A stretch of 64,000 nt of DNA from Magallana gigas (Eukaryota), in NCBI RefSeq assembly GCF_963853765.1, contig NC_088856.1, positions 19,468,001-19,532,000 on the forward strand, given 5' to 3'. Positions 1 to 57,021 of this stretch are shown piece by piece. The first letter of the stretch is position 1; each line of letters starts with the position of its first letter. The notes under the pieces are model-generated. The model did no database searches. It was not told the origin of the DNA and saw nothing but the letters and a program-made list of their open reading frames with translations. A program made the position numbers and the translations under genes.

Positions 1-783
1 TATTACCATTTCTAAGTTTGTAAGACTTGGATTTCTTACAGTAAAGTAAGGACCTGAAAATAAATTCCTCAGAGGAAGGCATAATATTTGCTTTCCGTAA
101 ATATCTCTCTAACATAGCTACAGGACATGTATCATTTGGAGTTCTTGAAATAACCACAGTGCTTCCTTCTTTGTATACATCGGTCTTGCTTCTTTCTATA
201 AACAACGAAACATGAGAATCAAAAATACATATGTTAGATCTTTTCAAATTTATCAGTTCGGAAAAACGCAAAAATCCAGCATATGCTATTAAACACATGC
301 AGCACAATCGTATATCTTGTAAGGAATCCGATTCTTTTCCAAATTTTTTCACTAATTTTGATAACACTTCCGGTGAAATGGGCTCTTTTTTCTTTACGGT
401 ATGGCTGACTGATCTTATAGCTCCTTCTTTCACTGAATTGACAAGAGTGGAATCGCATGGATTTTTAAAGTCTCCTAGAGAATGAGCCCAACTTATAGAA
501 TATACCGCTTCTTGAATTTTAGCTACAGAATGGAATTTAGTCGACAAGTGAATAATGTATATAGCGACGTTTGTCTCTGAAGCTGGTAAAGGGCTAATCT
601 GGGGTATAAAGGAAGAACACCACTTGCAAAAAGCGTTAAAAGCATATTTGTATTTTTTACATGTGTTTTTCGCTTTGGATTTTAAACAATACTCTGGGAT
701 TGCGTTTTTCAGAGCTGATATGCGCTGATCCTCGTTATCATTTCTGGAGAGGACTTCCTTCCATCTCCCCACAGAAAAAATGT
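1..783 (-). CDS. Tyrosine recombinase (YR) of the DIRS-order element; partial, continues beyond position 1
   Basis: Manual translation of an uninterrupted minus frame (~260 aa): DIFSVGRWKEVL...KAKNTCKKYKYAFNAFCKWC...CLIAYAGFLRFSELINLKRSNI...FIERSKTDVYKEG...CPVAMLERYL...FIFRSL. It contains the YR catalytic Arg motif (GFLRFSEL) and the SKTD motif. Absent from the ORF track. There is no ATG at the 5' end, which is preceded by a polypyrimidine tract and CAG at 786-784. Confidence 0.92.
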
Positions 784-963
784 CTGAAAAACGTAAACAA
801 AAAACACCAATCAATATGACAGAATAACGATGCAGATTTTATGAAAATATCAAGCCATGTATTTATCACATTCGTGATAACGTTGTTTTATACCTTTTTA
901 AAACATATAAATAAGTATCATATACACTTAATATCATGCATTAGCTATATACCAAAGTCATAT

Positions 964-1330
964 CCACTGGTTACACCACGCTGTGTACCAGGACTTACTC
1001 ATGTCCACTGGCTACACCATGCTATGTACCAGGACTTACTCAATTCCACTGGCTACACCATGCTATGTACCAGGACTTGCTCATTACAACTGGCTACACC
1101 ATGCTATGTACCAGGACTTGCTCATTTCAACTGGCTACACCATGCTATGTACCAGGACTTGCTCATTTCAACTGGCTACACCATGCTATGTACCAGGACT
1201 TACTCAACTCCACTGGCTACACCATGCTACATGTATGTACCAGGACTTACTCAACTCCACTGGCTACACCATGCTATGTACCAGGACTTGCTCATTTCAA
1301 CTGGCTACACCATGCTATGTACCAGGACTT
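964..1330. repeat. Tandem array of a 41-bp unit (8 full + 1 partial), each with an internal inverted repeat
   Basis: Units start at 964, 1005, 1046, 1087, 1128, 1169, 1210 (47 bp, 6-bp insertion), 1257 and 1298. Core actggctacaccatgctatgtaccaggactt; variation is mainly in the ~10-bp linker. Confidence 0.97.
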
Positions 1331-1480
1331 AACTCCAAAATTTTTTATTTACTATATAAAGTATCATTCACCCCGATCAATTAATCGTCAAAATGTATGT
1401 ATCAAGACTTGAATGTAAAACAAAGTAAAAAGATATTATATGTTCAAAAACATCAACTTTTTTATTTCAGCAACAATACA

Positions 1481-3535
1481 TCAACATTTACCAGCATCTA
1501 ATCTTACGGCCAACACGGGAGTACAAAAATTGTTAGATCCAAATATAGAGTGTTTGTTCAATCCTTGTTGAAAAATATTTTGGGGGTTTTTAAATTCGAT
1601 TACTTCTTGTACGTAACCACGATAGCTTAGATTTTTCCCAAAAATAAAAGTCCAAAAAGGAGAAGAACTCCACTTTGGAACAATAAGAGTACCCTTGGCC
1701 TTACAGCTCACAAGATATTTGATAGTCTTAATTATCAGAATAACAGGTGGCACAAGCCAGTTATTTTCATCACTCCAATTCTGACAAAAACAATCGACAT
1801 TTTCTGAACCTGGATTCCAAAACAAGGAATTAAATCTTTCCAACTTTTTATTATAGGAATTTGCAAGGCGATCTATTGTATGTGGACCCCACAATTCATC
1901 CATGAATCGGAAAAATTCCTTTGTCACACCCCAATCTTCATAGTCTATGATATTGCTTATATAATCAGCTTTGATATTTTCTTGTCTTGGAATCCATTGA
2001 ATATCAATATTAATACCTTTCTGAATACAAGCAGAGAAAATATTCATGGCTAACTCTTGTAATTCCAATTTCATACTCCCACATTGCACTATTTTTACAC
2101 ATGCTTGATTATCTGTGAACCACTTAATAGTCTTTGATGCAAATCTGTCTTGAAAACATTTCACAGTTTGTTCAATGGCTCTTAATTCACGCCACGTAGA
2201 ACTTTTCTTAGCCTCATGCTCTTTCCACATTAAATGAAAAACCTCTTGATTTACATCAATAGTATAAGACCCTGCTGCTACATTACTTGCATCAGAATAA
2301 ACAACAATATCTTTCTCAAAAACACTACATAGTTTCTTTTTGTTAGATACAAAAATATTCAAAAGCCAAAAGTTCAACTCTTTCAATATGTGTTCCATTT
2401 TTTCTGAATTGAGAACACTATCCCAAGACGACCTTGACACTATTTTCATATAACAATAGCGTGTCATAATTCTACAAACATTCCCGAAGACGGGAGAGAG
2501 CGAAATAATTTTACCTGTCACCTTAGCAAGTTGTCTCGCCGTAACTTTAGGCATTAATTTTAACAAACACTCTAATGAAGACTTTAAGTCATCAATACGC
2601 CTTTCTGGAATACACAATGTAAAGTCGATCGAATTCCAAACTAAACCCAACCATTCTAACTGCTGAACTGGTTGAAAAACAGACTTCTCGATATTAACCA
2701 GAAAACCAGCCTTGTCCAACGTATCTTGAATAAATTTTGAAACATTCTCACACTGATTTTTTGTATTTGACAACACTAAACCATCATCTAAGTACAAAAC
2801 GATGTCTATACAGTTTTCTCTAAAGTATTTAACAATAGGGCGCAAGCATTTAGTAAATACATACGGCGCTGTACTAAGTCCAAATGGTAAAACCGTAAAA
2901 CAGTAAAACTTGTCCTTCCATGAAAAACCTAAATAAGTCTGGGACTTAGTAGAAATATCAATGTGATGGTAACCTGAACGTAAATCGAACTTGATACAAA
3001 AACAATCTTGTCTGAAGTATTCTAAAGCTATTTTCCAGTCTTCAAATTTAATGCGTTCTTTTTTAATGTAAGTATTCAGAGTGCTCAAATCCAAAATTAA
3101 ACGTTTTTTATTTTTGTTTTCGGCCACGCTTAAAGGACTGACAAAGAACGGCTGGAAGGGAACTTCTACAATACATTCAGACAAAAATAACTGTTGAATA
3201 GCATCAGATACAAAGGAATCATTTCGTAATGCAGACTTGTTGTTATTCATGCACATAGAAGGTGGATTGGCAGTAAACGGAATATCATAGCCCGATTTTA
3301 TTATTTTCAAAATTGAGTCATAAGTATTCATACTCTCCCAAAATGATATATGTCTAAATAAGCTTTTCTTTATACCCTTTGTGTACATAAATGATTTTTC
3401 GTTATCAATTACATCAAAATAATCAATGTGCTGAAGAATTTCAGAATCACTTTCACAATTGATATCAAAATACTTATCTTCCACTAGAGCTCTGTTGTCT
3501 GGAAGTTGTTTCCAGCGGGACACTTGTTCTTCCAA
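1481..3535 (-). CDS. Pol of DIRS-order retrotransposon: reverse transcriptase + RNase H + C-terminal DNA adenine methyltransferase-like domain
   Basis: RT motifs FDLRSGYHHI, VLPFGLSTAP, LYLDDGL. RNase H motifs VYSDASN, STWRELRAI, FTDNQ, WIPRQENIKADYIS. MT-like tail TIDRLANSYN...DCFCQNW...WLVPP...GTLIVPKW. The track's start codon is TTG, not ATG. Confidence 0.95.
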   Translation of the reverse strand: MEEQVSRWKQLPDNRALVEDKYFDINCESDSEILQHIDYFDVIDNEKSFMYTKGIKKSLFRHISFWESMNTYDSILKIIKSGYDIPFTANPPSMCMNNNKSALRNDSFVSDAIQQLFLSECIVEVPFQPFFVSPLSVAENKNKKRLILDLSTLNTYIKKERIKFEDWKIALEYFRQDCFCIKFDLRSGYHHIDISTKSQTYLGFSWKDKFYCFTVLPFGLSTAPYVFTKCLRPIVKYFRENCIDIVLYLDDGLVLSNTKNQCENVSKFIQDTLDKAGFLVNIEKSVFQPVQQLEWLGLVWNSIDFTLCIPERRIDDLKSSLECLLKLMPKVTARQLAKVTGKIISLSPVFGNVCRIMTRYCYMKIVSRSSWDSVLNSEKMEHILKELNFWLLNIFVSNKKKLCSVFEKDIVVYSDASNVAAGSYTIDVNQEVFHLMWKEHEAKKSSTWRELRAIEQTVKCFQDRFASKTIKWFTDNQACVKIVQCGSMKLELQELAMNIFSACIQKGINIDIQWIPRQENIKADYISNIIDYEDWGVTKEFFRFMDELWGPHTIDRLANSYNKKLERFNSLFWNPGSENVDCFCQNWSDENNWLVPPVILIIKTIKYLVSCKAKGTLIVPKWSSSPFWTFIFGKNLSYRGYVQEVIEFKNPQNIFQQGLNKHSIFGSNNFCTPVLAVRLDAGKC

Positions 3536-4251
3536 TGGCCATACTTAAAGCATCCGAAGCAAACGTCGGTTGGCTGTGGGGTTCTCTGTCTCCCACGAAA
3601 ATACGCCTGCTTGGGGTAGGCGAGAAAAGGCTGAGAAGCGCTAACAAGAGCAGGAGTTTGAGCGGCCAATTGAGCGGCGGATCCAGCAGCGGCGGACACA
3701 TAGCCTCTGTTCGGGACACTTTGATATGGGCGCGGCCTGTATTTAAGACGGAACTGCTTGACACTCCTGAGGGCGCGGTTTTCCGCACTACGGATCTTCT
3801 TTTCATCCTCTGAATCATCTGTAATATCACTGGCCTTGTATTCATTCACCGTTTTCCAGCCTGCTGGTGACGAGTCGGCGATTCTGATATGCTTATTACG
3901 GGTATCGATGTCGTGAATTATCTCGCTGATTAACAACAATGATTTGTGATCACCTTTCGATTTCACAATTTTCTCCAATTTAAGGACCTTCTCTTTAAGC
4001 CCTTCATTAAACTCGAACTGGATCTTGTTACCCTCCGATTTCAGCTTATTCCCGATATTTTCTTTCACCTTCTTCTGCAAATACTCGGAATTCTGAGACT
4101 GCTCCGTTTGTAGTTTTTCTGTTAACTCTTCAAACTGGTTTTTTATAACAGTAGTAAATAAATTTACTACGTCGGTCAGGTCAGGCGCAGATTCACTCTG
4201 TTCATTCTCTTTCTCAATCACTATATCATCGGCATTAACTGGTCGAGACAT
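3484..4251 (-). CDS. Gag-like ORF1 with C-terminal CCHC zinc knuckle
   Basis: 255 aa, ATG start. Zinc knuckle CFGCFKYGHWKNKC; central RNKHIRIADSSPAGWKTVNEY...DDSEDEKKIRSAE block typical of YR-retrotransposon gag. Overlaps the pol frame. Confidence 0.9.
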   Translation of the reverse strand: MSRPVNADDIVIEKENEQSESAPDLTDVVNLFTTVIKNQFEELTEKLQTEQSQNSEYLQKKVKENIGNKLKSEGNKIQFEFNEGLKEKVLKLEKIVKSKGDHKSLLLISEIIHDIDTRNKHIRIADSSPAGWKTVNEYKASDITDDSEDEKKIRSAENRALRSVKQFRLKYRPRPYQSVPNRGYVSAAAGSAAQLAAQTPALVSASQPFLAYPKQAYFRGRQRTPQPTDVCFGCFKYGHWKNKCPAGNNFQTTEL

Positions 4252-5415
4252 ATTACATGTACGTGCAAATGCGGCAAAGAAAAGCCTTCGAATGAGTGAA
4301 AATCGTGCTTAACTTGAATACCTGTTCTACAGGTTATATGCTATAAATAGTAGCCAATGGCTACAGGTTTAAATATATAAAACCAAAACATAGAACATGT
4401 GTTCTAGTACCTATGATAAATTAATTGTATATACGTCCCTGATTTGACCTATTAAAGAGGTTTTGTGTGTAGTGATCCATTAGGAGTGGATTAAAGATTT
4501 AATTTTAATTAGATTGATAATAATATAAAGGAATATTATACCTGGAGAATTGAAAACTACTAAAAATATTAAATTGTGTTCCTGATCAGACATGGCCTTT
4601 ATCAGTATTTGGGTTTTGACTACTACTGTACTAACCAATCTTTCGGTAAATTAAACTTTAAGCTTTGTTGTACGGTAAATATTGGCATTTCTGAAGAAAA
4701 TTTTTAGGCTTTAGTTTTTTTATTTTCTCTTCTTTGAAAAGGATTTGGACCTTTCAATGAATTCTCTTTGCTCATGTTTCTTAAGTTTGATTTGTGACAA
4801 AGAAGTCTGGTTGAAATTTGCCACATGGTTAAAAAAAAATATGCAGGCAAAAACCTTCAAATCCTGAAGTCAATTGAAATAATAGGGGTCAACACGTCAC
4901 ATTCTAATGTCTGTTACTGGTATTTTAACAGGTTGAAATAAACATTTACATGTATGTATGAAATTAAACTTGCATATTGAACTAGCAATAAAAAGACACA
5001 ATAACAGAATTTCAAGTTAAAAATGTATTAAATTAATTTATCTTTCAAACAAATTATACAAGTTATAATTTACAAAGGACTAGATGAAAAAAGTTACATA
5101 CAGCTCTTGAAGCATACATGGACGTGCATAGAAAAATCTCTGCGAAGAACATGTACATGTTCTCTTATCTTTACAGACTTTTCAACAAAGATATTTCTGA
5201 TAAAAAAAATGTCTCTATAAGAACTTGTATACTTGATCACTAAAATGTACATCATCCATGCGATTAGTCACGGTTTCTTGGCACTTCAAAGTTCAAATAC
5301 CATCACAGATATTCCCATATGTACAATAATTGGTCCCTTGAAGTCGCTGAGTAATCAAGAGCATGCTAGTAGTAATATGGCATGATGGGAGCAGCAAAGC
5401 ATGCTGGGAATGCTC

Positions 5416-8400
5416 TCAAGATGCTGAAGACCCTTCCTCCTCTCCCTCCTCTTCTACTACAACTTGGTATTGAGACACCCACTCTTCTGGATTTTTTTCA
5501 TACAACTACAACAAAAATAGACTAAATAATGATGCTACTTCTAAAATGTTTCCGCTTTTCAAGAACTTTTAGTTATTTTTGTAAACATTTTCTGAAAGTT
5601 AAAAAGCTTCCATTTCTGAACAGCCTTCAAACTCAATCTTGCAGGTATTAGACCATTGATACATGTAATTTGCAGACATTTTCTAGCCCTGTAGACTCAT
5701 CACCCTAAGGACGTTCAAAGTTAGGTGTCAAAACAATCCACAATGTCAAAACAGATGGACCTGTGGATTCTGCAGTTACATCATTCTGATTTTGTTATGA
5801 AATGATTATGAAATGATTGATGCATCTCACCTGACTGACAAAGTCCAGACAGTTCCTTTTTGTGATTTCCTTCTTAGCTCTGAACCCCCATCTGAACTCA
5901 AAGACCGGGGGGTCGGTGTTTGGCTGACGAGTGTACTCGAGGTACCCTTGTCTCACAAACTCAACAGTCAGCTGCTTTTTGACATCACCAAAGACAGGAT
6001 GAGTCACACTGCAAAAAATACAACACCAGAACATGTACAATTACTGAAAGAAAAAATTCTTAATTAAAAACTGACTAGATATTTTAGAATTTTTATTCTA
6101 AAAGGTTTGAATCAAATAAAGAAATCAACACTGTTTTGAGTATTACATCTATTTAATATAAAGATAAATGCATAAATTATCAAAAAACAATAATTGAAAG
6201 TAATTACTTACTCTTGATCAACTTTAAGTTTTCTCAGCATGTGATAAAGTTGAGCTAAAATAAAAAGTAGACATTCTGGTAATCATTCAAATGTTCTTTT
6301 ATACTACATACCTTTTTCAACATTTTCAAAACAACACCTTTCTTAATTTTATTTTTCATACAAAAAACATATCACACAATGAAACTCATGTTAGTAAAAT
6401 GCAAGTTTTCACTAGTTTCAAAGAGTTTCAATATATTAATCATGAAGGCAACAAATGGGGATGAAAAGTCGTCTCAGCTGTATGGGTCTGGAACCCAGGG
6501 TTTCCAGGGTACTGTGTAAGCACTAAGCTAAAGAGACCTAGTAAGCCAGTATTGACTGACAATTGCACATTTGTTAACTTGATAACAATGAGTTTTAAAC
6601 AAGTACTTACAATCTACCATAACTTCTCCATTCATAAATATAGCACTGAGTACGACCATCAGGAGTCCAGTCTTGGCGTGATTTTCGTCCGACCAATCGA
6701 CGGGGGTCAAGGTCAAGTTGGGGTCACTCTCCAGCTGCTCATCTACGTCGGTGTCTAACGTATTGACCAGGATATATGTACCTTTCTGTTTGTCCTCTAA
6801 ACTCACCAACTCTATCCCAAAGATCTGAAGAATGCCAGGGAAAATAACATTTTTTAAAGATAAAATTAACCTCTGGATTGGTAAAATCTTTATATTAAGA
6901 TCTGAGTTAGTAAAATGAACTCTTTTTAAACGTGGCAAAAATACTCCCAAGAGTTCCTGCACATGTACTGTAGATACCCTTACTCTAGGTGATTTTTCTC
7001 CCAGCAAAAATCCAGTAACATATATTTATTTGCAATCAATATTTCTTATAAATTGCTGATAATTAACTTGTTCATGTATGAATAACCTTTAGGTTATGAA
7101 AACATAACCCCAAGAAGTTGTTGGCACATGAAATTACAAGAAAAGAAAGTTTTCATTAATTGAAAACTTTCCTTAATAGATGATGTATGTACATATTATT
7201 ATCTATAAATTACTGAATAAATGTAAGCAAGAAAAGACTCAATTCATTCACATGTATTCACCTTTCTAAGCTTTTCTTCGGCTAGTTTCATCATCACAGG
7301 GAGAGCTTTACTGTGTTCCTTTAATACCTGCTTATTTATATCTGTACAAAACCATTTTACAATCTATAAACATCAACATATTCCTTATGATTAAAAATAA
7401 TTCTTACTCAGTTTTATGGTCACCGAGATTCCATTGGCTTATTGATGTTCAAACATTAGCTATAATGATCCAATATGACCCCTATCCAGTCACAAATGTT
7501 TTCTCTCTTATAAAAACCATTCACAATATCTGCTGCACTGCTCTTTGCAGGGTATATTTACAGTTTTATAAAGCTATTGTTTCATTTACTGCTACATCAT
7601 ATACTGTGGATTCCTAATTAAGAGCGAGGAATTTTTATTGGCATAAAATCATGAGAAGCACATCTCGCAATTTTTTTAATTTGCTTTTTTTTTTTCAAAC
7701 ATACGTAAACTAAATGAAATTATAATAATTGGCATTTCACAATCTTATATCTAATACTAGTGATTTGATGCAAAATTGTTGAATCGTGGAATTTAGTTCT
7801 TGCGTAAAATAAGGAATCTACAGTTATTGTTAGTAGTTATTTACCAAATAAAACTTTGCCAATCTACAGCAATTTGCTACTGCAAAAAAACAGTAACACA
7901 GCTATTGAGAAAGGGTTAACTTATAAATTAAGATATTCTTTAAATTAATCTTTACTTTACCAAGAAAGTAAAGACATACATACTAATACATCCCTGCTTT
8001 AACATGGGGAAAAATAAGTAAAACTGTAACTCAAAACATCAAACAGCGAAATATGGCTTTCTCCATCCATGAAATTAATTGTAGGAGTTTCATATTCCTA
8101 CCAAGTTTTTTGATAGGTAGCTTCTTTTGGTCCATTATCAACAGGAACTGGACGAGGTCATGCAGCTTCTTTTCCTGTTCTCCGCGGTCCATACTCGAGT
8201 GAGCTTTCTCTGCTTGTGTAGCAGACACCTGAGAACTTGGTATTCTGTCATTATCAGGCTAAAATACAAATTAACATACAAATAAATAACTGCAATCCAA
8301 TTAATTACTAGGGAGGCTACTGTCTACAATTCAATTCAGTTTATTTACTCAAACCATGAAATGGTGCATGAGGTCAATCAGTCTACAGGGACAATCATAA

Positions 8401-10816: not shown

Positions 10817-11869
10817 GTATCAGGAGAAAACGTACCCAGGAGAAAACGTACCCAATCTCCAGGAGATTTTCTATGAAAATCATAATTATACTACTTAATA
10901 GTTTTTAATACTTTTATATACTATTTTGCATAACAAATATACAGAAATGTAAGAATTTCATAGATAAATGAATTTAATACTTTATAATTTGGACATTTTA
11001 AATAATTTTCATTTGCTACTTTAATGCATATTTCAATGCATAGATGTATAGAAATATATTTTATTTTTATGAATGATATCTTTATAATAATTGTAGCAAC
11101 TTTTATTTTACAAAATAATGACCTGTCATAAAGTGTTATCAGTCTACTTCTTCTAATTATCCATTTATCGGTAGCCTTACCGATTTGAGTTTCTCTATGC
11201 GAGATCCCCTGATTTTAATTATAGTGATAATCAATTAAATACCTGAGGAGTCATTATTATGTAATATTATGTATTGCCTCCCCGCGCAGGAGGTAGAAAT
11301 ATTCACTCTCCACACATAATACATGTCAGTGGCGTCGGAAGCAAATTGACTGTTCAATGTTACATCTCGTAGTAGTTTCCATATATATGAATCAAACAAA
11401 TATTTAAAAGACTTGAGCTTGGTTTTATTATAAGCAACTTTGTTTTATAGATAATTTTCAAAAAAATGTTTTAAAAAACACGATATCGACTTCTTGAGAT
11501 ATTCATCATTTAGTTCTCCAAAGAGATTTTAATAAAAACTACTTATTTCACGGTTTTTTATGGTGGATTAATTGTTGACTAATTAAACTGCTCAGGCCAC
11601 GTTCGTGTATGTGTATGTTACAAATTATTGTCTTAATAATTTAAGTACGTGACCATGGTGACTATGCATTTAAAAACTACAGCAACAAATGATACAAATG
11701 TTCATTGTATATTTTATTTTATTTCATTTAAGAATATCTATGAAAACCATTATTTATTATTTCCATAGGGTACGTTTTCTCTTGGAGAAAACGTACCCGG
11801 GTTCTCCTGGAGAAAACGTACCCTATAAATTGGGTACGTTTTCTCCTGGGTACGTTTTCTCCAGCATTC
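10817..11869. mobile_element. Non-autonomous Mutator-like (MULE) element
   Basis: 9-bp target-site duplication aaaaattgg (10808-10816 and 11870-11878). Imperfect TIRs built from the repeated motif ggagaaaacgtaccc (2 copies left, 5 right in both orientations). AT-rich non-coding interior. Confidence 0.8.
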
Positions 11870-56560: not shown

Positions 56561-57021
56561 AGTTATGACTTACCCCATTACATTTGTAATCAGTAACAAC
56601 GCACTGTACTAACCTTAATCCGAACCTAACCTAACCCTAACCCTATCCCTAACCCAAAACCTAACCTTAACCTAAACCCATTTGTAACCAATGTTACCTG
56701 TAACCAATGTAACCTGTCACGAGTACATCAAAGTTTGTATATTATTCATAATCAAGCAATGTAACCGATATAACCAATGTTACTGGTTACAAATAGAAAG
56801 GGGTAATTGTCAGGACTAATGCTTGGTCCTAAACCCTAATCCTAACCCTATTAAACTAACCCTAATCCAAATCTTATCCAACCTAACCCTAACCCCAAAC
56901 CTAACCCTAACCTTAACTCATTTGTAACCATTATTAGACAATGTTTCATTCATAATCAAGCACTCTAACCAATGTTACCAATGTTACTGGTTACAAATAG
57001 AAAGGGGTTAAAGTCAGGACT
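56561..57021. mobile_element. TIR-bounded non-autonomous element with internal degenerate (CCCTAA)-like repeats and a duplicated right half
   Basis: Left end agttatgacttaccccattacatttgtaatcagtaaca is an imperfect inverted match to tgttactggttacaaatagaaagggg..gtcaggact, which occurs twice (ending 56817 and 57021). Two blocks of cctaaccctaa-like repeats. Confidence 0.6.

Follow-up and report, generated by a model that had tools for sequence, protein, structure and literature searches.

A tandem array of RNA hairpins between the Pol and tyrosine recombinase genes of a bivalve PAT-like retrotransposon, probably a working tag of its unspliced RNA

What is a short tandem repeat doing between two genes of a retrotransposon? 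The question is raised by a 64,000-nucleotide stretch of the Magallana gigas genome (contig NC_088856.1, positions 19,468,001 to 19,532,000 of the forward strand), referred to hereafter as the window, in which nine repeated units separate the Pol gene of a mobile element from its tyrosine recombinase (YR) gene. A reading made from the letters of this DNA alone (the sequence-only reading) had described the units as RNA hairpins and proposed that they serve in Gag binding and packaging or in splicing control, with the caveat that intact stems might be chance in a young minisatellite. The selection, packaging and processing of RNA by tyrosine-recombinase retrotransposons are, to our knowledge, almost unexplored, and our search of the open literature found no such arrays, YR splicing or packaging signals described for elements of the DIRS order.

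The array belongs to an element whose genes are all on the minus strand. The parts that can be recognized in the window are:

4236..4425 (-): 5' terminal direct-repeat region, likely the 5' end of the element (79% identity to the 159-nt repeat of the related contig L001)
3484..4251 (-): Gag-like ORF, 255 aa, taken from the ORF list
1481..3535 (-): Pol ORF, 684 aa, with reverse transcriptase, RNase H and a weak Dam-like (MT) C-terminal domain
1334..1480 (-): AT-rich spacer preceding the array, which aligns weakly with L001
2..783 (-): YR exon (tyrosine recombinase), cut by the start of the window, from its translation and a Phage_integrase match

The 5' terminal repeat stops just upstream of the Gag ATG. 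The Gag-like ORF matched no Pfam family above threshold, and its translation ends in a CCHC zinc knuckle (C-X2-C-X4-H-X4-C). Pol was recognized by RVT_1 (Pfam, E=2e-21) and the truncated YR by Phage_integrase (E=2.5e-5); the full-length YR of the family is P0125. The C-terminus of the window Pol scored 15.2 bits on PF05869 (Dam), below the cut-off of 28.1, and the Pol proteins P0061 and P0009 of relatives scored 30.3 and 27.8 bits, respectively. In L001, 159-nt direct repeats (729-887 and 5356-5514) bracket the ORFs. That contig stops 32 nt past the second repeat and the window does not take in the 3' end of its own element, of which no second copy was found within the window.

The element thus has a reverse transcriptase and RNase H together with a tyrosine recombinase, not an integrase, in the order Gag-Pol-YR on a single strand. 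PAT-like elements carry Gag, Pol and YR in this order on one strand, whereas DIRS1-like elements have the order Gag, YR, Pol with overlap; PAT-like termini bear split direct repeats, and Ngaro and VIPER lack the MT-like (Dam) domain that follows RNase H (PMC3266345). A Gag-Pol-YR retrotransposon of the DIRS order and of PAT-like type, rather than Ngaro, is indicated by the order of the genes, by the MT-like domain of relatives and by the terminal direct repeats of L001; the Dam-like domain of the relatives, weak in the window copy, speaks against Ngaro. Relatives of Pol numbered 1509, and the named ones are all bivalve (Mytilus, Magallana, Pinctada, Pecten and Mercenaria). DNA carrying Pol relatives was taken from metagenome, Logan and NCBI contigs.

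Several other features of the window were noted in passing. Just past the 5' end of the element lie an ORF with a MAGE-homology Pfam hit (6528-7007, minus strand) and two ORFs that appear MAGE-like by eye (5795-6040 and 8031-8228); all three probably belong, as exons, to a host gene that adjoins or surrounds the insertion. About 1 kb separates a tandem 16-mer from its reverse complement (10821-10854 and 11831-11862), a pair that looks like the inverted repeats found subterminally in a small foldback or MITE-like element. Long C2H2 zinc-finger ORFs occupy 29280-31946 and 33333-34259 on the plus strand, and interstitial degenerate telomere-type repeats (CTAACC / AACCCT) occupy 56609-56917.

The array itself consists of the following units:

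959..1333 (-): array of nine stem-loop units (TRF, pattern search, unit alignment A2, covariance model and pair counts)
1293-1333, 1252-1292, 1205-1251 (47 nt), 1164-1204, 1123-1163 (-): individual units
1082-1122, 1041-1081, 1000-1040, 959-999 (-): individual units, continued

The nine hairpins described between Pol and YR were recovered both by TRF (period 41, 9.0 copies, 90% matches, 958-1331) and by a covariance model made from the units, which gave nine hits of 57-67 bits at 959-1333 on the minus strand and no further unit in the rest of the 64 kb window; the window sequence has zero N runs. An Rfam 15 scan of positions 1-6000 left the array unmatched, with four weak hits (E 0.4-0.6) elsewhere. 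Each stem-loop reads CUGGUACA / UAGCAUGG / UGUA(G)CCAG within a unit of 41 nt, one unit being 47 nt long. When the 25-nt core CTGGTACATAGCATGGTGTAGCCAG was used as a search pattern on the minus strand, seven exact copies and one with three mismatches were found where none was expected. In the ninth copy, that of unit 1205-1251, 6 nt are inserted where the loop begins on its 5' side. The three substitutions of the 3'-most unit (959-999) fall at two loop positions and at the bulged G, so that the unit alignment agreed with the earlier claim that the changes of this unit are confined to bulge and loop and that a 6-bp insertion enlarges one loop.

Differences between units spared the stem pairs, as had also been claimed. 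Among the nine window units 10 of 41 columns vary, all of them outside the 16 stem columns (hypergeometric P=0.003), and the three variable columns of the 25-nt core likewise lie outside the stem (P=0.04). The variation within the L001 array spares the stem as well (P=0.011). The two linker haplotypes, said to alternate, are arranged in blocks instead (A B B A A A' B' B'').

Does such a unit fold unusually well? RNAfold gave -9.4 kcal/mol per unit, with two possible registers. An 8-bp stem with a bulged G and an 8-nt loop, as in the sequence-only reading, is one possible fold, but the register that RNAfold prefers is shifted by one base and has a U.G pair, a bulged A, a 6-nt loop and two outer pairs in addition. 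The unit hairpin was not unusually stable relative to dinucleotide shuffles (z about -0.7 to -1.1), and for the whole array z was -1.5 when the sense strand was folded and -2.4 for the antisense strand. Folds of the sense strand (z -0.7 to -1.5) thus have no greater stability than shuffled sequence, and thermodynamics alone proves nothing about the hairpin.

Which RNAs of the element would carry the array depends on where its transcripts are spliced. Two sites are predicted in the window:

1486..1494 (-): predicted 5' splice site GCTG/GTAAAT (the slash is the exon boundary), at the Gly codon that lies three codons ahead of the end of Pol
784..810 (-): predicted 3' splice site, a pyrimidine-rich tract followed by CAG, with the AG at 785-784 and the exon from 783 in phase 1

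The YR frame of most lineages lacks an ATG between the conserved F-[S/T]-D-[I/V]-F start and the stop that precedes it. The window YR is of this kind, being free of ATG codons from the stop upstream to its own conserved start, D-I-F, and the translation upstream of the YR start reflects pyrimidine-rich sequence. An acceptor at the same codon and in the same phase was found in the window, L001, L003, L016, L017, L030, L083 and L097. RefSeq models P0181, P0182, P0184 and P0186, from mussel and oyster, join Gag or Pol exons exactly at this acceptor. On L097, P0181 has the donor TCC G/GTAAGA and the acceptor TTTTTCAG/AT, and the array of that element is inside its intron. On L083, P0186 has the donor ATC G/GTAACA, and P0182 together with P0184 the donor TCA G/GTACAC. 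All of the mapped donors are G/GT at Gly codons in phase 1, and the introns are canonical GT-AG. We also noted that the Pecten maximus model P0218 (L098:2861-2866 and 5405-5414) joins Gag to YR at the usual codon with no clean GT-AG intron, and this junction was left out of the evidence.

Strong phase-1 donors are present in the Gag of L003, L016, L017 and L030. The window and L001 have weak donor candidates only, and the donor in the window is for this reason a prediction; it would end the exon at 1492 with the GT at 1491-1490, in phase 1 and in frame with the YR exon, with a simple donor score of 3.1, and an in-frame Pol-YR product would result. The window-type Gly-codon donor is absent from L001, which has an in-frame ATG instead. 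The earlier placement of the array inside an intron is accordingly supported by the ATG-less YR, the conserved acceptor and the RefSeq junctions, with the window donor predicted. Fused to Gag or Pol, YR appears to be made from spliced RNA. With donors at various places in Gag and Pol, the spacer between Pol and YR is the sole segment absent from all spliced forms, as judged from exons examined one by one, and an array upstream of the conserved YR acceptor would occur only in unspliced RNA.

Arrays in the same place were found in related elements. L001, whose Pol is 77% identical to that of the window, has an array of period 42 with five units plus one degenerate unit. The contig of L002 (Pol about 97% identical, DNA 98%) terminates inside the first unit. 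L003 (Pol 56-57% identical) has an array with a 49-nt period that begins at the Pol stop, and L097, a copy on a Mytilus californianus chromosome, has 5.7 units with a 53-nt period; the hairpin segment of L097 aligns gap-free with that of L003. Unit counts in the window, L001, L003 and L097 are 9, 5-6, 4-7 and about 6, respectively. In the Pol tree the window element groups with L001, L002 and L003 in a clade with a support of 99. Searching with the stop-free antisense ORF of the array located L093, L094, L095 and L096, which hold decayed arrays of the 41-nt family with 4, about 12, 8 and 7 units. A Pol remnant lies upstream of the array in L093 and L096 and YR lies downstream in L093, in which the 3'-most unit has the same three variants as the 3'-most unit of the window. 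The decayed arrays are linked to oysters by Logan runs of the SRR6063xxx series. These runs contain, besides the arrays, a family with a YR N-terminus that, as far as residue 13 of the exon was read, matches RefSeq models of Magallana gigas. Repeats of other kinds occur in the Mytilus californianus element as well: 59-nt tandem repeats inside both terminal repeats (L097:1630-1824 and 7076-7289) and, just downstream, a 47-nt satellite of 27 copies (L097:8100-9393).

For this clade, with four lineages and the decayed copies, the array is thus a constant feature of variable copy number, the property that the sequence-only reading had named for testing. The sister clade, an oyster family (L083-L092), has a 258-nt spacer with no TRF array, and many other related lineages have no TRF array in the Pol-YR spacer, so that elements can do without an array of this form. 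Counts of presence and absence are biased, as contigs assembled from short reads tend to break at arrays. The possibility of an unrelated minisatellite dispersed in the genome was not borne out: no unit was found elsewhere in the window and ORFs derived from the array number only four among 5.8 billion proteins, so the array is not a dispersed satellite. A degenerate unit pattern was also unmatched in IMG/VR viral contigs.

Has the array been kept by selection? Between the window and L001, Pol shows 43.8% identity at 160 four-fold degenerate sites, which is near saturation, while the hairpin core is identical at 21 of 25 positions (P=4e-5) and the linker at 9 of 16. Two of the four core differences are a single A-U to G-C swap in which the two arms change together, from TACA/TGTA to TGCA/TGCA. 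The loop centre AGCAUG is conserved between the two elements apart from single-unit variants. The unit core thus does not look like an unconstrained minisatellite evolving at the neutral rate, and the caveat that the array is a young one with stems intact by chance is refuted by the same comparison.

The pairing was followed in two alignments. In A3, which holds 34 distinct units, 93.5% of the pair cells are paired and double changes occur at three pairs; shuffles never reached the observed pairing or the covariation score. Since L003 has a longer loop and is out of reach of the covariance model of the window and L001, L003 and L097 were aligned separately (A4). Placing L003 in the hairpin register of the window was tried and dropped, with energies of -0.7 to -3.5 kcal/mol against -8.7 to -13.2 kcal/mol for an inner 8-bp stem. 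L003 and L097 fold into this inner stem and a 3-bp outer stem. In A4, 95.5% of the cells are paired (25-60% in slid controls; 19-60% in slid controls over the alignments), and double changes occur at three pairs: C-G to U-A, A-U to C-G, and C-G to U-A or G.U. The count of double-change pairs, the measure most robust to relatedness, was not significant, as it was equalled in 41 of 500 shuffles for A3 and in 178 of 500 for A4. The main evidence for a fold of the sense strand comes from two positions of A4 at which U.G and G.U pairs are conserved, since neither would pair on the antisense strand or in the half-sites of a duplex. Double changes were found once from the window to L001, once in a decayed unit, three times from L003 to L097 and once in the 27-mer family described below. 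The covarying stem positions that the sequence-only reading had proposed to look for were thus seen as compensatory and G.U changes, in about six independent compensatory events, a total that is supportive, not overwhelming.

Other hairpins occupy the same spacer in other lineages. A 27-mer array, GCGCU-UCAU-AGCGC, is present in the Pol-YR spacer of nine loci that form their own clade. Its terminal unit is A-U compensated, another unit gains a C-G pair, and at z -2.5 the 27-mer is the sole hairpin to reach such a value relative to shuffles. Unrelated arrays in this spacer are a 46-mer in L029, a 54-mer in L071 and a 32-mer in L007. The loops of the other array families (UCAU, GAGU and ACUU) are unrelated to that of the window. 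A small hairpin, GCC-loop-(U)GGC, occurs in 2-6 dispersed copies per spacer in lineages without TRF arrays:

L008, L014, L016, L017, L029, L036, L042, L061, L072, L082; L098:5011-5240: spacers with GCC-loop-(U)GGC

In Pecten maximus (L098) six copies are spaced 33-43 nt apart. Among 35 held-out lineages, GCC-loop-GGC gave 21 sense-strand hits in 18.9 kb of spacer, compared to 2.7 expected from the upstream rate and 1.4 from shuffles, and 6 hits on the antisense strand; these lineages are interrelated, so the P-value is indicative only. By eye, the pair adjoining the GCC/GGC stem is complementary in 17 of 28 copies (37.5% expected). Some spacer motifs (GCCGAGTGG and GCCAAGTGG; for example, in L008:6117-6128 and L036:3036-3045) coincide with a 9-mer of the Pol III A-box or tRNA D-arm, GCNNAGTGG. 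A tRNA-like nature of the GCCGAGTGG motifs was considered and rejected, as ARAGORN finds no tRNA.

Taken with its position, the array is probably a working tag of the unspliced RNA, since the stem has been kept through compensating mutations in related elements. The reading that fits best is a sense-strand RNA module under selection in a bivalve PAT-like YR retrotransposon. As to what the module does, we lean, tentatively and short of an even chance, towards a multivalent platform on unspliced RNA for Gag binding and packaging. The repeated hairpins would be bound by the element's own CCHC-knuckle Gag, so that the RNA taken into particles would be genomic RNA rather than the spliced YR mRNA; avidity would depend on the number of copies, and in each lineage hairpin sequence and protein would evolve together. 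This function is favored because the hairpins turn over as if tracking a partner encoded by the element, because multivalency recurs across the lineages and because the position of the hairpins separates genomic from spliced RNA. The lineage-specific turnover fits better with an element-encoded partner than with a host factor. A broader version, in which an evolvable genomic-RNA identity tag for Gag is dispersed in some lineages and amplified into arrays in others, is possible but rather doubtful. In DIRS-1, RNA that was artificially spliced is still reverse-transcribed (PMC7192593), so that the exclusion of spliced RNA is no proven need in the DIRS order.

If the module acted on splicing instead, it would regulate, from within the intron, the 3' splice site of YR, which follows 175 nt further on, for instance through the displayed GCAUG, and would keep most RNA unspliced or make splicing tissue-specific. 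Splicing retroelements need balanced splicing, as is established for retroviruses, and GCAUG is the core motif bound by RBFOX-type proteins. The array is 175-550 nt upstream of a conserved acceptor, AGCAUG is found in eight of the nine window loops and this loop is invariant between the window and L001 save for single-unit variants. One canonical motif lies outside the array:

935..940 (-): UGCAUG, the single canonical copy between array and acceptor; L001 has UGCAUG in the equivalent stretch

GCAUG occurs 9, 5 and 3 times in the spacers of the window, L001 and L003, respectively, and GCAUGG recurs in the units of L097. In the spacers of other lineages, in contrast, GCAUG is not enriched (1.10 per kb compared to 0.82 per kb upstream), and it was rejected as a general spacer feature outside the clade of the window. 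The loops of the other array families are unrelated, the base before GCAUG in the window loop is A and not U, and a host factor with a fixed motif predicts conservation of that motif across lineages rather than turnover. We regard splicing control as unlikely, though still a live rival. The array could also owe its existence to replication, if hairpins stall reverse transcriptase and template slippage amplifies the hairpin units; the Pol-YR spacer would then be the only stretch that tolerates insertions, and the stem would be kept by amplification bias. Arrays of unrelated units arose several times in the same spacer, copy number ranges from 4 to 12 within one family, many lineages are without arrays, the stability of the hairpin is unexceptional and tandem arrays are known from non-coding parts of plant retrotransposons (cited in PMC8268682). 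Slippage does not explain, however, why the unit core is at 84% identity when neutral sites have dropped to 44%, why the loop sequence is conserved like the stem, or why array-less lineages have small, dispersed, strand-specific hairpins, and we consider such a minisatellite an improbable, though still live, account of the array.

Two further readings take the units as DNA or as templates of other products. In their inverted-repeat geometry, with arms of 8-9 bp around a spacer of 8 bp, the units recall lox/FRT-like cores, and the YR gene is their neighbor; a palindromic duplex target for the recombinase or for a host factor (e.g., an internal promoter or enhancer for YR) would also be expected to show the joint arm change from TACA/TGTA to TGCA/TGCA. 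Against such a site, the one-base asymmetry (the bulge) is conserved, the U.G and G.U pairs of L003 and L097 would be mismatched half-sites in duplex DNA, and GCC-loop-GGC favors one strand by 21 to 6. Recombination of YR elements is believed to take place at their termini (PMC3266345). An element with recombination sites in direct repeat every 41 bp would tend to destroy itself, and a DNA-level site is very unlikely. Least credible of all, and close to being dismissed, are precursors of small RNAs or antisense frames coding for a repeat protein. Small-RNA precursor hairpins have a stem of about 20 bp or more, and the stems here, at 8-11 bp, are far below known Dicer or Drosha substrates. All three antisense frames of the array are open and have given rise to public gene calls (P0121-P0124), but no Pfam hit was obtained, the four such ORFs are the only ones in the protein collection cited above and, as a period of 41 is not a multiple of three, an antisense 'protein' merely cycles through the three frames. 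The open antisense frames in the window (841-1332, 983-1384 and 1065-1412, plus strand; 163 aa) are likely artefacts of a stop-free repeat.

The packaging module preferred here has partial counterparts in known systems. Like the retroviral Psi downstream of the major 5' splice site, it would consist of stem-loops present in unspliced genomic RNA only, in an element with a CCHC Gag, and its sequence is lineage-specific; the array, upstream of the conserved acceptor and downstream of all donors observed or predicted, would have the placement of a packaging signal, in genomic RNA and not in spliced RNAs. Retroviral signals are, in addition, specifically bound by Gag/NC and required for encapsidation, for which the counterpart seen here is the CCHC knuckle of Gag. 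Unlike Psi, it is a tandem array of one hairpin in the 3' half near the acceptor, not in the 5' leader, and it belongs to a DIRS-order (PAT-like) element rather than to an LTR element or retrovirus. The resemblance to RBFOX (U)GCAUG clusters and intronic retroelement regulators is the repeated GCAUG upstream of a regulated 3' splice site; here the motif is in a structured loop and is not shared by other array families. Plant LTR retrotransposons of the Ty3/gypsy (Ogre/Tat) type have tandem-repeat regions inside non-coding parts (cited in PMC8268682). These are, as here, short arrays in an untranslated region that vary in copy number and between lineages, and Ogre also has an intron; those arrays are treated as hypervariable and unconstrained, whereas here the core is conserved beyond neutral sites and forms a covarying hairpin. 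The dispersed packaging signals of ssRNA viruses of the MS2/STNV type (PMC6475782) are many weak, degenerate stem-loops with a shared loop motif that act by avidity, a likeness that covers both the tandem arrays and the 2-6 dispersed GCC-loop-GGC hairpins. Theirs are genome-wide and bound by coat protein, whereas the hairpins here are confined to one intronic spacer of a retrotransposon. The imperfect hairpin, its conserved bulged base and the adjacent tyrosine-recombinase gene are also reminiscent of integron attC sites. These are folded single-stranded hairpins with extrahelical bases that are recombined by a tyrosine recombinase. The units here are internal, however, and not at recombination junctions. 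DIRS-1 has single-stranded cDNA intermediates (PMC7192593), but the first-strand cDNA is antisense and the better fold is on the RNA-sense strand.

For the widespread elements of marine invertebrates to which this one belongs, the analysis offers three testable features: a spliced YR message, hairpins present only in unspliced RNA, and arrays that covary. If the hairpins control splicing, they would be to this retrotransposon what splicing silencers are to retroviruses. If they are a tag for Gag, they would give the DIRS order its first described cis-acting packaging signal, one that arose naturally by tandem amplification and is tunable by copy number.
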